Virus record (IMG/VR): IMGVR_UViG_3300035183_000733
Location: 124,001 to 188,000 of that record
Strand: one strand, 5' to 3'
DNA: 64,000 bases
The first letter of the stretch is position 1; each line of letters opens with the position of its first letter. Positions 659 through 16,041 of the stretch are shown piece after piece. The translations under genes and the position numbers were made by a program. The notes beneath the pieces are model-generated. The model did not search any database. It saw nothing but the letters and a program-made list of their open reading frames with translations, and was not told where the DNA came from.

Positions 659-1575
659 CAGGTCCTCGATTTCTTTGTCGAGTCTATCAAGCTCGGGTTG
701 CTTCTAACCGCGCACACGGGGATAGCCACCATCTTGTGACGGTTGGCCCTGTTTCTCGTTCTGTATATGTCGAGCACTTGCTGCTGTCTGTCAGTCAGAT
801 CATGTTCGAGAGGCTTCTGCATTCTATCGGTCTCCTCGTAATCCATGGCCCACTCGAGCTCGGCATACGTGGCGCCGATCTGGTCCTCGTCCGTGCGGCC
901 GTCGTCCCAGAGGCCGTCAGTCGGTCTCGCATCCTGTATCTCGGAGATAATGCCCAGGCACTTGGCCAGCTCATAAACCTCGGTCTTGTTGAGGTCGGCT
1001 ATCGGGCTTAAGTCGACCCCGCCATCTCCATACTTGGTGAAAAAACCCACGCCGAAATCCTCGATGCGATTGCCGGTGCCTGCAACGAGCAACTTATGCT
1101 TGGTCGCCAGATAGTACAGGGCAGTCATCCGCATGCGGGCCCTCGTGTTAGCCCTCGACAGGAATTCGGTCTCACGACCTACTTTCTTCTCCAGTCCATT
1201 GTACGGTGAGTTGGGGAACCTGGTAGTGAACACGGAATCGATGTCGTTAAGCGCGAGCATGAAGTGCTCGTACACGCTGGTGAGGTCGTAATGCACGACG
1301 TCAATATTATGCACGCGCTGTTCCTCCGAGATCCTTACAAGGGAGTCAATGTGCTTGTGTGCCCGCCTGACTTCGTCGGTCTTCTGCGCTATTGGCATGA
1401 CAACGCACACGGTGCGCAACCCTGTCATTGAGCACAGCTTGGAAACTACAGCAGAATCTACTCCGCCCGATACTCCGACCACGAAACCGTTCACGTTGGC
1501 ATTGGTAGCATAATCCTTTAACCACTTAACTATGTGGTTTGCCACCGCCGGCATTTTTAAAACTTTACCGGACAT
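658..1575 (-). CDS. nadE: NH3-dependent NAD+ synthetase
   Basis: GVSGGVDSAV PP-loop, RANTRARMRM, GTGNRIE..GFFTKYGDGGVD..PIADL.K, PTDGLW....DEDQIGATYAELE. Confidence 0.95.
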   Translation of the reverse strand: MSGKVLKMPAVANHIVKWLKDYATNANVNGFVVGVSGGVDSAVVSKLCSMTGLRTVCVVMPIAQKTDEVRRAHKHIDSLVRISEEQRVHNIDVVHYDLTSVYEHFMLALNDIDSVFTTRFPNSPYNGLEKKVGRETEFLSRANTRARMRMTALYYLATKHKLLVAGTGNRIEDFGVGFFTKYGDGGVDLSPIADLNKTEVYELAKCLGIISEIQDARPTDGLWDDGRTDEDQIGATYAELEWAMDYEETDRMQKPLEHDLTDRQQQVLDIYRTRNRANRHKMVAIPVCAVRSNPSLIDSTKKSRT

Positions 1576-7443: not shown

Positions 7444-7561
7444 TCGTAGAGCTTAAATGTCCATAAAAAATTCAGTTTGAAAGCATCACGAGCCAAGAAT
7501 TGTTCCGGTAATCAATGCCCGTTTCCTTTTCTCTTTCGCCCCTTCAGAAATTATTCAATAA

Positions 7562-7585
7562 AAAAGCGAACTTAGGTTCGCTTTT
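7562..7585 (-). terminator. intrinsic terminator downstream of tmRNA
   Basis: aaaagcgaac-ttag-gttcgctttt perfect hairpin. Confidence 0.7.
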
Positions 7586-7663
7586 AGGGCCGACCGGTAT
7601 GACTAAATATCTTAACCAGTAGCATCCACCAGTTCATTTTTCGAGGAATGAACAAACCTTCAG

Positions 7664-8095
7664 TGGAACCGGGCGGATTCGAACCGCCGTCCAAAAAACC
7701 TCATGACCAGCCTTCTACACGTTTAGGAACGTTTCCAAACCTTCCGAACAGGATGAGATTTTCTAACCTCCCAAAATATCCCAGACTTTCGATCCGGACC
7801 ATCTACCCACGTTACCAGCTTTGACCCGCCGTTGCGTAGGCTCATAGGGGTTGAAGTTTTGGGGTCACTGGACCTGGTCCAGCTTCCCGGTGTTAGGCGA
7901 ACTCAAGTTCTTCTACTTGAGCAGCAACAGGCTGAGCCTTGGTTGCCTTCTCGACTGCTAACACGTCGGCAAGTCCGCCGACCTCGTTAGTGATGTTGCC
8001 ATCTAAAACGTAGACTCATTTTTTACGTGTTGATTCCACAGTAACACGACGTGCTTCTCTGAACCATTGGATCTCTGTCGATGCCGTACGGTCCC
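7664..8095 (-). ncRNA. ssrA: tmRNA
   Basis: 5' GGGACCG pairs with 3' CGGUUCC-A including the G3.U Ala identity pair; 5' ..UCGACAG; T-arm GGCGGUUCGAAUCCGCC; internal tag ORF 7893-8000; CCA not encoded. Confidence 0.9.
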
Positions 8096-9273: not shown

Positions 9274-10128
9274 TTACTTAAGCATTTGCATTGCTATGTC
9301 TGCGCCGGGCACGTGGTTCATCAGCGCCATAACTACGTACAGCGCGGCCAGCACCAAAAGGTAAAGCGCCATCGACTTTATCATCATGCGCCCGTCCATT
9401 TTCTCCGTAGTATCGCGGTGCTTCTCTATCAGCTCGTCCATGATCTTCGCGCTCTCATCGGTCAGGTTGGGCTTGTGCTTCTCCAGTTCGGTCAACGTCT
9501 GCTGTATCTTGTGGCTCTGGTACTCGAAGTAAAGCTCGAGGCCACCGATTATTATCAGGACGACAAACGTCCACAGGCCGAGAAACACGACGGCCGCAAG
9601 CATGGCAAGCAGCGCAAGCAGCATGTACGCGAACCCAACGCGCTTGTCTATCGACAAGGTTATTGATTTCAGCACCCTGCCTCCGTCCAGTGGGGTAACA
9701 GGGAACAGATTAAGTATGTTGACCATGGCCATCCACGATGCGCACGCGGCAAATAGGGGGTCCATGGTGGCGCAGTATATGACAAGAGACACCACCGATA
9801 GGGCGAACCCGAATATGGGCCCCATCATAGCGATGTAGACCTCATCCCACCTCGACTTGGCCATGCCGTCCGAGACCGCGAGACCGCCGACGAACGGTAT
9901 CAGGTAGATGCCCTTGGTCTTTATGCCGCAACGCTGCATAGCCCAGATATGACCGTACTCGTGGACTATCAGCATGGACAATATTATCACGGAAAATTGC
10001 CAGGTGAATATGTATGCGTAAGCGGCGAACGAAACGCCGGCGAGAACGAACTTTGTGCTTTTTGCGAGTATGCTCAGGATCTTTGATCCTATCTTCAGAG
10101 CTATCGCTAATAATCCGAATTTTTTCAT
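9274..10128 (-). CDS. site-2 protease (peptidase M50)
   Basis: HEYGH, IAMMGP, NLFPVTPLDGG motifs within hydrophobic segments. Confidence 0.9.
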   Translation of the reverse strand: MKKFGLLAIALKIGSKILSILAKSTKFVLAGVSFAAYAYIFTWQFSVIILSMLIVHEYGHIWAMQRCGIKTKGIYLIPFVGGLAVSDGMAKSRWDEVYIAMMGPIFGFALSVVSLVIYCATMDPLFAACASWMAMVNILNLFPVTPLDGGRVLKSITLSIDKRVGFAYMLLALLAMLAAVVFLGLWTFVVLIIIGGLELYFEYQSHKIQQTLTELEKHKPNLTDESAKIMDELIEKHRDTTEKMDGRMMIKSMALYLLVLAALYVVMALMNHVPGADIAMQMLK

Positions 10129-14112: not shown

Positions 14113-16041
14113 TTACTGATTGGCGGGTTCTTTGCTATTATGGATGTCGTTCCTAAGTATAGGATACAAGCCCTGCACCGTCTTTGGCACGTGCGTCTTG
14201 AACTCGCCGAACTTGTCCTCGTCCACGAGCTTGCGCACGTCGGTACCCGATATGATCCTCCGAGTCTCCATCACCTCGAACTTCTCGTCGAGGTCGAGCT
14301 CGTTGTTGCGCTTGAAGTTAAACTCGAGCTGCTTGCGGTAGTCGTTTATCCTGTCAGGACCCGCGCCCCACAGTATCGGCTCGAACTCCGGCCTCAGCGA
14401 ATCTATGATGTCCTGTATGAAGCCCCTGCCGACTATCCTGTAGCCGATCACGAGGTCGTTGGTGTCCTTGTGCAGGTTGCCAAGCATCGTCCTCAGTGTG
14501 GATATAGTGAACGGGCTGTTGCCCGACTTGTTGTGTCCCGGATGCACGGCGACTATTACGACGGGCAAGCCGTTGGCCTCGTTAAGTTCCTTCACCATCT
14601 CGGCGTGCCCGTTGTGGAACGGCTGGAACCTTCCGACTATTATGTTAACCCTCTTTCCCTTCTTCTTGGATTTCTTCTTGACGTCCTCCTCTTCTTTCGG
14701 CTCATCGGCGGACAAAAGGTCCATAGTGTTTTTGAGCCCGGTCATTTCAGGATCGGAATCATCCACAGAATCACCATCGGTGTCTGCGTCCTCGTCCTCA
14801 ACTTCGGGCCTGCCCCTCTGTGCTATGAACTCGCCGAACAATGGCACGTCGTTTTCGTTGAGGCTCTCCCTTAGGTTCTGTGATAGGTGGTTGTTTATCT
14901 TGTCTATGGTGCCATTGAACTGGCGGATAACCTCCTGGCTGAAGAAGTTGTTTGCCTTCTTCTTGTGCTTGCGCAGAGATGCCAGCATTATCTTGAACAG
15001 TTTCTTGTACGAGTCCGCCGAGTCTATGAGATCGAGCGCCTCCTGGTTCGGTATCATCTGCCTGTTGAGGTCGAACTCCTTTTTCTTCATGTAAGCCGGC
15101 TCGGAGAAGTTGATGTTCTTGTAGTCCTCCCCCCTTTCGGATATGAACTTTATGAATAGGTCGCAGATGAAGTTTATGTACCTGTCGTCGAAGTTACGCC
15201 CCTTCGGCTTGAACTTCTTTAGGTTTAGGTTCTCGACGTAGTTGGCTATGTCGATGAGCGTCATGTAATAGATGTCGTTCGGCGTGTCGTTCGTCTCGTT
15301 GACCCTGTTCTGCGCCATCTGCGAAAATATCGGGTCCACCATCTTGGCAAGCACCACGTCATCGTCGTCGCTGCCGAACCTAAACACTATTCCCTCTATT
15401 GGCTTCTCCAGATCCTTGTTCAGGACCGTGCTGCGCATCTTTGGGTTCAGAATGGATATTACGTACTTCACGAAGGACTCGGTCTTGAACTTCTTCTCGA
15501 GCTCGGCCTGCGGCGTGTCGAGGAAGTCGAGGATCTTTATCCTCTGGTCGTCGTTGAGAACGCCCTGGAATATTATCGGCGCGCGCTCCACCTGCAGGAT
15601 GTCTGCCCACTTATCGAGCTCTTCCTTGTCCTGGATTGTACGGACCATCTTGCCGGCCGAGTTTTTCACGTGAATGTACGACAGCACCAATCCGTTCTTC
15701 GGGAGCTTGTCATAAACAAGCTCCTGCGGATTTGAGTTGGCGAAGTACTCCATACCGAACCTCCATCCACTGGGTAGCTTGGCAAGCACCTTGTCGCCAA
15801 GGCTGTTGATATGCTCGATAGGTGCCTCGTAATAACGCACGAGGGTCCTGTCCACCTGGGAAATTGGGTTTGTAGTGTTGCGCTTGAAGAATTCGATCTT
15901 CTTGCTGATCGGATTCTTCTCTACACCAAAGGCGCTCGCGTCGAGCTTTTCGTTTATAGTGACATAACTGTCGAATAGTTTGTCCAGAAAATCTTTGCCC
16001 TTCTTTTTGTAGATTTCGTTTAAGTGTGCTATTCCCGCCAT
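14113..16041 (-). CDS. RNA-ligase-like nucleotidyltransferase fused to a HIGH-motif (cytidylyl/NMN adenylyltransferase-like) domain
   Basis: N-terminal EKLDAS, FGMEY, PIIFQG, EGIVFR, AKMVDP (ligase motifs I-V); C-terminal GRFQPFHNGH and ISGTDVR. Confidence 0.75.
   Translation of the reverse strand: MAGIAHLNEIYKKKGKDFLDKLFDSYVTINEKLDASAFGVEKNPISKKIEFFKRNTTNPISQVDRTLVRYYEAPIEHINSLGDKVLAKLPSGWRFGMEYFANSNPQELVYDKLPKNGLVLSYIHVKNSAGKMVRTIQDKEELDKWADILQVERAPIIFQGVLNDDQRIKILDFLDTPQAELEKKFKTESFVKYVISILNPKMRSTVLNKDLEKPIEGIVFRFGSDDDDVVLAKMVDPIFSQMAQNRVNETNDTPNDIYYMTLIDIANYVENLNLKKFKPKGRNFDDRYINFICDLFIKFISERGEDYKNINFSEPAYMKKKEFDLNRQMIPNQEALDLIDSADSYKKLFKIMLASLRKHKKKANNFFSQEVIRQFNGTIDKINNHLSQNLRESLNENDVPLFGEFIAQRGRPEVEDEDADTDGDSVDDSDPEMTGLKNTMDLLSADEPKEEEDVKKKSKKKGKRVNIIVGRFQPFHNGHAEMVKELNEANGLPVVIVAVHPGHNKSGNSPFTISTLRTMLGNLHKDTNDLVIGYRIVGRGFIQDIIDSLRPEFEPILWGAGPDRINDYRKQLEFNFKRNNELDLDEKFEVMETRRIISGTDVRKLVDEDKFGEFKTHVPKTVQGLYPILRNDIHNSKEPANQ

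Follow-up and report, generated by a model that had tools for sequence, protein, structure and literature searches.

Why phages carry a tmRNA has, to our knowledge, never been tested experimentally, and the gene considered here adds a second question, namely why such an RNA should encode a tag of unusual length and ending. The gene lies in a 64-kb window, by which is meant the whole stretch of DNA that was analysed, corresponding to positions 124,001-188,000 of a 373,759-bp IMG/VR virus record (G000) that CheckV rates as 100% complete. Coordinates are positions in this window unless a record is named with them. A preliminary description of the window had proposed a phage tmRNA at 7664-8095 with a 35-residue tag that ends in -EFA and lacks a terminal Ala-Ala. 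It must therefore be asked whether the RNA is a translatable tmRNA, whether its tag is really so long, and what the tag might do to the proteins that receive it.

The identification is provided by a covariance model. A cmscan search of Rfam places the full length of RF00023 (tmRNA; model positions 1-374) on the minus strand at 7661-8095. The match scores 86.7 bits, where the gathering score is 47, and has an E value of 3.1e-32. RF00023 is the sole Rfam family above threshold in the 64-kb window, and this is the only match to it above the cut-off in the whole 373,759-bp genome. The ends given in the preliminary description proved to be exact (Table 1). The acceptor strand GGGACCG (8095-8089) pairs with CGGUUCC (7671-7665), including a G3:U pair, which is the mark of alanine acceptors. 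The G3:U pair is invariant in all members of the family described below, and the T-stem and acceptor pairs covary. The bases that directly follow discriminator A7664 are CUG, so that CCA is not templated, as had been read from the letters. The terminator-like hairpin downstream of the mature 3' end, which is missing from the consensus-scan output, implies a 3' trailer that has to be trimmed before CCA addition. ARAGORN makes no call in the window, even with relaxed thresholds, and the assignment therefore depends on the covariance model and on comparison with five relatives.

Table 1. Features of the tmRNA locus, in window coordinates
Feature	Position	Strand	Basis and remarks
tmRNA gene, mature G1 (8095) to discriminator A (7664)	7664..8095	-	432 nt before CCA addition; RF00023 and homologues in G001, G004, L062, L063, L143
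tRNA-like domain, 5' half: acceptor 5' strand GGGACCG including G3, then GGCAUCGAC D-loop analogue	8077..8095	-	sequence
PK1 region: CGUGUU/AACACG interleaved with UGUGGA/UCUACG	8009..8048	-	stem search; ends 8 nt before resume codon
Frame-setting motif UAGAU, upstream of resume codon	8001..8005	-	UA[AG]A[UC] in 6/6 members
Resume codon GGC (Gly)	7998..8000	-	Rfam alignment; GGC or GGA in 6/6
Tag frame, 35 codons, ending -EFA	7896..8000	-	open at 34-36 codons in 6/6
Hairpin A, GUCGGCG-GACU-UGCCGAC (codons V-G-G-L-A-D), inside tag frame	7965..7982	-	consensus fold with two-sided changes; single folds of every lineage
Branched "expanded helix 5" domain	7890..7964	-	consensus fold; same architecture in G001, G004, L063, L143
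Closing stem, GUGUUAG (V-L-A codons) with CUAACAC, containing the UAA stop	7964-7958 with 7896-7890	-	pairs covary
Hairpin B	7947-7923	-	enclosed by closing stem
Hairpin C, CUCAAGU/ACUUGAG, QVEELE codons	7922-7901	-	enclosed by closing stem
UAA stop, predicted within stem, not loop	7893..7895	-	folds
tRNA-like domain, 3' half: T-arm GGCGG-UUCGAAU-CCGCC, acceptor 3' strand CGGUUCC, discriminator A	7664..7688	-	sequence
Terminator-like hairpin GCGAAC-CUAA-GUUCGC and U6	7560..7581	-	about 80 nt downstream of mature 3' end; read from sequence, weak
M50 (site-2 type) membrane metallopeptidase	9277..10128	-	PF02163, 72 bits; also L062:104-958, L048:8001-8900; context, not a proven part

Six sequences from five lineages, all on huge-phage or metagenome contigs, make up the family (G000, L062, G001, G004, L063 and L143), which was searched for by exact patterns only. 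With the neighbouring M50 peptidase gene as a lead, a 482-kb phage (G001) was found with a tmRNA of 101.1 bits beside the same gene and with its own SmpB. A degenerate DNA pattern for the last nine codons of the tag then yielded three more members: G004, a 508-kb genome with a tmRNA of 83.6 bits and its own SmpB; L062, 93% identical to the G000 tmRNA; and the divergent L063. Because these members had been picked by their C-terminus, a second scan relied on the N-terminal and middle motif NEVG..[A/S]D[V/I]L alone. It recovered G001 and G004 and revealed a new lineage (L143/L141), in which the frame is kept and the tag ends in -LVA. Beyond these members, the C-terminal pattern gave two matches in 185,579 bacterial and archaeal species genomes, both unlike the family tmRNAs by blastn and with upstream frames broken by stop codons. 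No match to the tmRNA was found by blastn in 50,697 GenBank phage records, and a T-arm pattern scan of viral contigs returned 36 unrelated tmRNAs, mostly of the alphaproteobacterial two-piece type, and no kin. A 745-aa neighbour used as a query found no relatives; when SmpB alone was the query, the only matches were two small and distant contigs that lack a tmRNA.

ARAGORN misses four of the six family tmRNAs and, in the other two (G004 and L143), sets a downstream start that gives a tag of 16 aa; on the family tag its output reads "Tag not identified". Therefore, surveys of viral tmRNAs that are based on ARAGORN will undercount this group and report its tags as too short. Other viral-contig tmRNAs have long tags by ARAGORN (L023:2493-2810, L039:4527-4965 and L044:5542-5980), at 33 aa with the end ...QLAAA or 30 aa with the end ...VAVAA, and these keep the terminal Ala-Ala.

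The tmRNA lies 132, 223 and 60 kb inside the 374-, 482- and 508-kb records of G000, G001 and G004, and on the fragment L141 it is 2 kb from a tail-sheath gene. In G000 its neighbours are the M50 membrane peptidase, an RNA-ligase/cytidylyltransferase fusion, a UvsW-like helicase and an NAD synthase. Such deep internal positions and phage neighbours point to a phage gene and not to a host gene at a prophage junction. That a host tmRNA was captured at such a junction or by mis-assembly, as might be supposed because integration commonly targets tmRNA genes and because IMG/VR labels G004 a "provirus", can be rejected as extremely improbable given these positions, the phage genes on both flanks and the finding of no bacterial tmRNA with the family tag end among the 185,579 species genomes.

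Several features of the surroundings were recorded as context. The M50 gene adjoins the tmRNA in G000, L062 and G001, with 42% identity between the G000 and G001 copies, but it is not within 6 kb of the tmRNA in G004 or L141, and a functional tie between the two was for that reason not adopted. The ligase fusion, located at 14116-16041 (-) and 6 kb from the tmRNA, is a 642-aa protein with an N-terminal RNA-ligase domain and a C-terminal cytidylyltransferase-like domain; it could serve in RNA repair or be NAD-related, and the NAD synthase lies at 661-1575 (-). The L141 fragment with the tail-sheath gene also encodes a 740-aa class I aminoacyl-tRNA synthetase of the Ile/Val/Leu type (L141:2053-4272, +), 3 kb from the tmRNA.

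The absence of smpB that had been remarked on for the window is true of the window itself, but not of the phage: SmpB is encoded at G000:195001-195453, 7 kb past the right edge, with 165 bits to the Pfam model (PF01668) and 170 bits to the equivalog NF003843 against a cut-off of 130. All three complete phages (G000, G001 and G004) encode SmpB, in each case with an intact basic C-terminal tail (GKK..DKR..IK.R). The phage thus supplies both members of the rescue pair itself, and its RNA need not rely on host SmpB.

The tag itself is conserved as a reading frame. The six tags are GNITNEVGGLADVLAVEKATKAQPVAAQVEELEFA in G000 (35 codons), GNITNEVGGYADVLAVVKATKAQPVAAQVEELEFA in L062, GNVITNEVGSKADVLAVLKTVKAKPSVAQVEELEIA in G001, GNVITNEVGSLSDILSVLAKSKTTATQVEELEIA in G004, GEIKNEVGSKADVLGVLKAMKSQTVASQVEELELA in L063 and GNITNEVGSRADVLAVINAQSKTVATQVEAELVA in L143. 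All six RNAs have UA[AG]A[UC] ahead of a GGC or GGA start, a UAA stop and no encoded CCA. Differences in tag length amount to 3 or 6 nt, which are multiples of three, and the minimum substitutions across the six sequences number 24, 12 and 36 at codon positions 1, 2 and 3 (chi-square p 0.0025). In the C-terminal half of the tag the corresponding counts are 15, 6 and 15, with no third-position excess. Judged by this alignment, the 34-36-codon frame is under coding constraint, and no other G000 reading frame has a tag-like end. The tags end in EFA, EIA, ELA or LVA, following a pattern of acidic, then hydrophobic, then Ala, in which the hydrophobic residue and Ala are always final; the Ala-Ala after a hydrophobic residue that characterizes the canonical ssrA degron is absent from these ends. 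Net charge ranges from -1.2 to -4.2 in the five tags that were analysed.

Instead of providing a template for tagging, the RNA might chiefly be a decoy or a regulator that, for instance, titrates host SmpB or senses stalled ribosomes; PMC4131195 suggests such a role for mycobacteriophage DS6A, whose tmRNA consists of the TLD only. For the present family this is very improbable: the phage supplies its own SmpB, the tag frame is under coding constraint and every element of a translatable tmRNA is retained, although a heavily structured open reading frame could hamper translation and the function of a phage tmRNA is not known to have been demonstrated.

If the RNA is a template, the length of the tag depends on the resume codon. 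The consensus resume codon of the Rfam alignment falls with high posterior probability on GGC at 8000-7998, directly after UAGAU. The motif corresponds in position to U85-A86 of the E. coli tmRNA, and the role of bases upstream of the resume codon is addressed in PMC2481249. Translation might instead resume downstream, where ARAGORN sets the start for G004 and L143, leaving a tag of ordinary length. The program there chooses in-frame GCA codons that follow UAUUA- or UUAAC-like contexts, but its two starts fall at non-homologous alignment columns and have no counterpart in L063. Moreover, the first 18 alignment columns, which are upstream of ARAGORN's start, carry 9, 6 and 21 substitutions at the three codon positions (p 0.005) and indels of 3 nt; UA[AG]A[UC] is invariant immediately 5' of GGC or GGA, and PK1 ends 8-10 nt ahead of this start in four of the six members. 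A downstream start is thus very unlikely, and resumption at GGC, and with it the long tag, is held with high confidence. The preliminary description had named both the GGC at 8000 and the 35-residue frame ending in -EFA, and had recognized that a downstream codon would undo them; the covariance alignment and the five further members agree with its choice, the substitutions and indels speak against a short tag, and of the two programs it had named for a check, cmscan supports GGC and ARAGORN is silent on G000.

How unusual such a tag would be for the host can be estimated from SmpB. Among the best 120 matches to the phage SmpB, the named ones belong only to Bacteroidota (Cytophagales, Chitinophagales and Flavobacteriales), at 48-55% identity. 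Between any two of the three phage SmpBs the identity is 45-50%, and with the best bacterial match of each it is 52-59%; the phage proteins form long branches within the Bacteroidota diversity in which a single phage clade is not resolved. The huge phage therefore probably infects Bacteroidota. A sample of 121 Bacteroidota genomes contained 117 with a tmRNA, of which 51 were read with ARAGORN and 50 were called. The tag is 8-10 aa long in 49 of the 50 and ends in LAA or MAA in all 50, so that the phage tag is not like those of the inferred host phylum. If the host is indeed a member of the Bacteroidota, the phage tag would be about 3.5 times longer than host tags and would have a different end, which bears out, for the probable host phylum, the early remark that the tag is unlike typical short tags ending in -AA. 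The one long tag in this sample, of 24 aa by ARAGORN's call and ending in ...SLAA, is from a Bacteroidales MAG (JAOAFV010000020; L072:1503-1889, -), and its resume codon may be mis-set.

The fold of the RNA offers an account of the tag's length. Structures were derived with RNAalifold on the family and by independent single folds of each lineage, and the two agree. Helix 2 is present in the six family members. The interleaved stems of PK1 can be drawn in all six, with a gap of 8-10 nt to the resume codon in four, and its first stem keeps a fixed position while both of its sides vary (CGUGUU/AACACG, CGUGC/GCACG, AUCGC/GCGAU, AUCGG/CCGAU and GUCGC/GCGAC). Shuffles of single sequences gave no significant result for PK1, and the support for it is thus comparative only. 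Within the tag frame, about six weakly paired codons come first, then the 7-bp hairpin A and then the branched domain. The mRNA-like domain of G000 has a folding energy of -46.2 kcal/mol and a z-score of -3.15, with none of 200 shuffles as stable; the z-scores across the lineages are -3.15 (G000), -4.18, -4.40, -2.73 and -0.82.

In canonical tmRNAs helix 5 is simple, and its loop holds the stop codon (PMC1168896). In the phage family the stop is instead predicted in the closing stem, which is a departure from the typical arrangement and not a disqualifier. In short, the length of the tag results from the growth of helix 5 into a branched, almost fully paired domain. Hairpin C is invariant in five members, and in L143 it is replaced by another register (ACUCAG/CUGAGU), by which the peptide becomes QVEAELVA. 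The hairpin explains why the QVEELE codons are near-invariant even at their third positions, and selection on the peptide is therefore confounded over the last 8 residues; the change of register in L143 leaves in place the acidic stretch and the hydrophobic-Ala end. The family indicates that a tmRNA tag frame can triple in length by elaboration of helix 5 and still be translatable.

Further partner genes are found in the complete genomes. G000 encodes a ClpP at about 106.3-107.0 kb (L069:1360-2046:+). Among the several ClpP models of NCBIfam, NF011091 fits this protein best, with 385.6 bits where the cut-off is 361, and a head-maturation model gives only 94 bits; by these scores it is a true ClpP and not a prohead protease. 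Each of the three complete phages has a ClpP match, the other two being at G004:189419-189946 and G001:236681-237085. The G001 copy contains one in-frame TAA. A CCA-adding/PcnB-family nucleotidyltransferase is present in G000, and an enzyme of the CCA type is present in all three complete genomes. Searches of G000 found no Lon, ClpX/ClpA-type AAA_2 protein, SspB, ClpS, S41 protease or AlaRS. Beside a tRNA cluster, G000 also has the gene for a free-standing GGQ (RF-1 domain) protein of 135 aa (G000:317658-318065, +), with a counterpart at G001:3724-4041 (-) and none in G004. This protein does not reach any of the curated cut-offs (RF1, RF2, PrfH and ArfB) and may be a codon-independent release or rescue factor.

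The G000 genome has 49 tRNA genes. It is plausible, as an inference from gene content (these tRNAs, the RNA ligase, the CCA enzyme and the GGQ factor), that the need for rescue arises from RNA-cleaving defences of the host or from host shut-off. Two of the tRNA genes have a CUA anticodon and would be amber suppressors (G000:19877-19952 and G000:42187-42258). Recoding of TAG was considered and set aside, since coverage by long frames rises from 0.83 under code 11 to 0.89 with TAG read-through, a smaller gain than with TGA or TAA, and no alternative genetic code was used in the analysis. Read-through of TAG by the suppressors could itself yield non-stop ribosomes that need rescue.

From the observed identity, reading frame, conservation and partner genes, a course can be inferred for charging, for tagging in vivo and for the fate of tagged proteins. 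The tmRNA precursor would be trimmed, CCA would be added by the CCA-type nucleotidyltransferase of the phage or by that of the host, and host AlaRS would charge the RNA by way of G3:U. The SmpB-tmRNA complex would enter stalled ribosomes, where translation would resume at GGC, and Ala and the 35-residue tag would be appended before termination at UAA frees the ribosome. The degron would then be read by a partner other than that of the short ...[L/M]AA tag of the host, and tagged proteins might pass to the phage ClpP through a host unfoldase. As a whole, the comparison of sequences makes it probable that a functional tmRNA and the phage's own SmpB carry out phage-borne trans-translation, with the end of the tag most likely acting as a retargeted C-terminal degron.

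What is essential in trans-translation is generally the release of the ribosome and not the breakdown of the tagged protein. This would suit a tag that is no degron at all and leaves tagged proteins spared, as the preliminary description had inferred as one possibility, or marked or sequestered. A tag of this kind is possible but rather unlikely. Hydrophobic-Ala forms the last two residues in all six members, and one of the ends, -LVA, is read by ClpXP in E. coli no less well than -LAA (PMC10862746). The last five residues carry a charge of -2 and the end is without the canonical Ala-Ala, which would favour sparing, given that strong degrons in E. coli tend to be non-acidic (PMC10862746); so would the failure to find a phage unfoldase or adaptor in G000. 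A functionless tag, however, would have no need for a conserved frame of 34-36 codons with a third-position bias, and ClpP is conserved in all three complete genomes. The hydrophobic-Ala ends, the activity of -LVA in E. coli and the true ClpP together lean toward a degron that is retained or re-routed, and a retargeted degron would accordingly seem somewhat more probable than a sparing tag.

A more specific arrangement can be imagined, in which the phage tmRNA and SmpB rescue ribosomes, the tag is ignored by the ssrA machinery of the host, and the products are passed to the phage ClpP through a putative adaptor or unfoldase, or are kept; the base-paired tag template may in addition protect the RNA against nucleases. 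This is unlikely as a complete scheme; if true, it would mean that phage ribosome rescue is decoupled from the protein quality control of the host.

Parts of this picture are already known. Phage tmRNAs were catalogued in 2014 from Bxz1-group mycobacteriophages and from Bacillus phage G, at which time no smpB was known in any phage (PMC4131195), and odd tags are thus familiar from these phages. Metagenomic huge phages with tmRNA, SmpB, release factors, many tRNAs and other translation genes are described by Al-Shayeb et al. (2020), whose tmRNA passages report calls made with ARAGORN and do not discuss the tags (PMC7162821); G000 is an instance of the same phenomenon at the level of gene content, including the pairing of tmRNA with SmpB. 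What is new is the conserved tag of 34-36 aa, the branched helix 5 and the presence alongside the tmRNA, in each of the three complete genomes, of SmpB, ClpP and a CCA-type enzyme; no description of a conserved long tag family or of a structured open reading frame was found in the published literature. Since the tag is conserved, is unmistakably of the phage type and is unlike the tags of the probable host phylum, it could be traced by mass spectrometry or with antibodies and offers a handle on the purpose of phage tmRNAs, all the more because the cognate SmpB and a ClpP are encoded in the same genomes.

Other known systems can be set beside the phage family. The ssrA tags of Mycoplasma and Mesoplasma are about 27 aa long, end in ...AFA and are read by Lon. 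Lon is the main protease in M. pneumoniae (PMC8403727). Like these tags, the phage tag is long and, in G000 and L062 only, has an aromatic-Ala end, and the mycoplasmas provide a precedent for a degron that is addressed to a different protease. The two differ in that no sequence homology is established, the phage has no Lon, the host phylum is another one and acidic residues precede the phage end.

Bacillus phage G (498 kb; PMC4131195) has a tag, AKLNITNNELQVA (L133:1568-1609), that resembles the phage family in containing NITN.E and in its hydrophobic-Ala end (...ELQVA). It is unlike the family in its 13-aa tag, its 309-nt RNA, its genome without SmpB and a tmRNA that ARAGORN recognises. The RNA has no detectable homology to the G000 family, and the likeness in NITN.E could be convergence or an A-rich start that is common to tmRNA frames. 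The tmRNA of the Bxz1 group (PMC4131195) is likewise phage-encoded and without CCA, with a long acidic tag that does not end in Ala-Ala (25 aa, ...EEAAALV), and at 435 nt and 73.9 bits with Rfam it is similar to that of G000. Unlike G000, it comes from a genome without SmpB and from a phage of another host phylum, and it has a shorter tag and no sequence relationship to the family.

The one-piece tmRNA (RF00023) and SmpB of Bacteroidota share with the phage the tRNA-like domain with G3:U, helix 2, PK1, the U-A-purine motif, a Gly or Ala resume codon and UAA. Many Bacteroidota tags have the same first residues, GN or GE, as the phage tags, and the phage SmpBs are 50-59% identical to those of Bacteroidota. 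Scores with RF00023 are 84-101 bits for the phage family and 105-198 bits for Bacteroidota tmRNAs. Compared with the latter, the phage tag has 34-36 residues in place of 8-10 and ends in E[F/I/L]A or LVA in place of [L/M]AA, and the virus-encoded RNA has a helix 5 that is a branched domain of three hairpins, with the stop codon in a stem and not in a loop.
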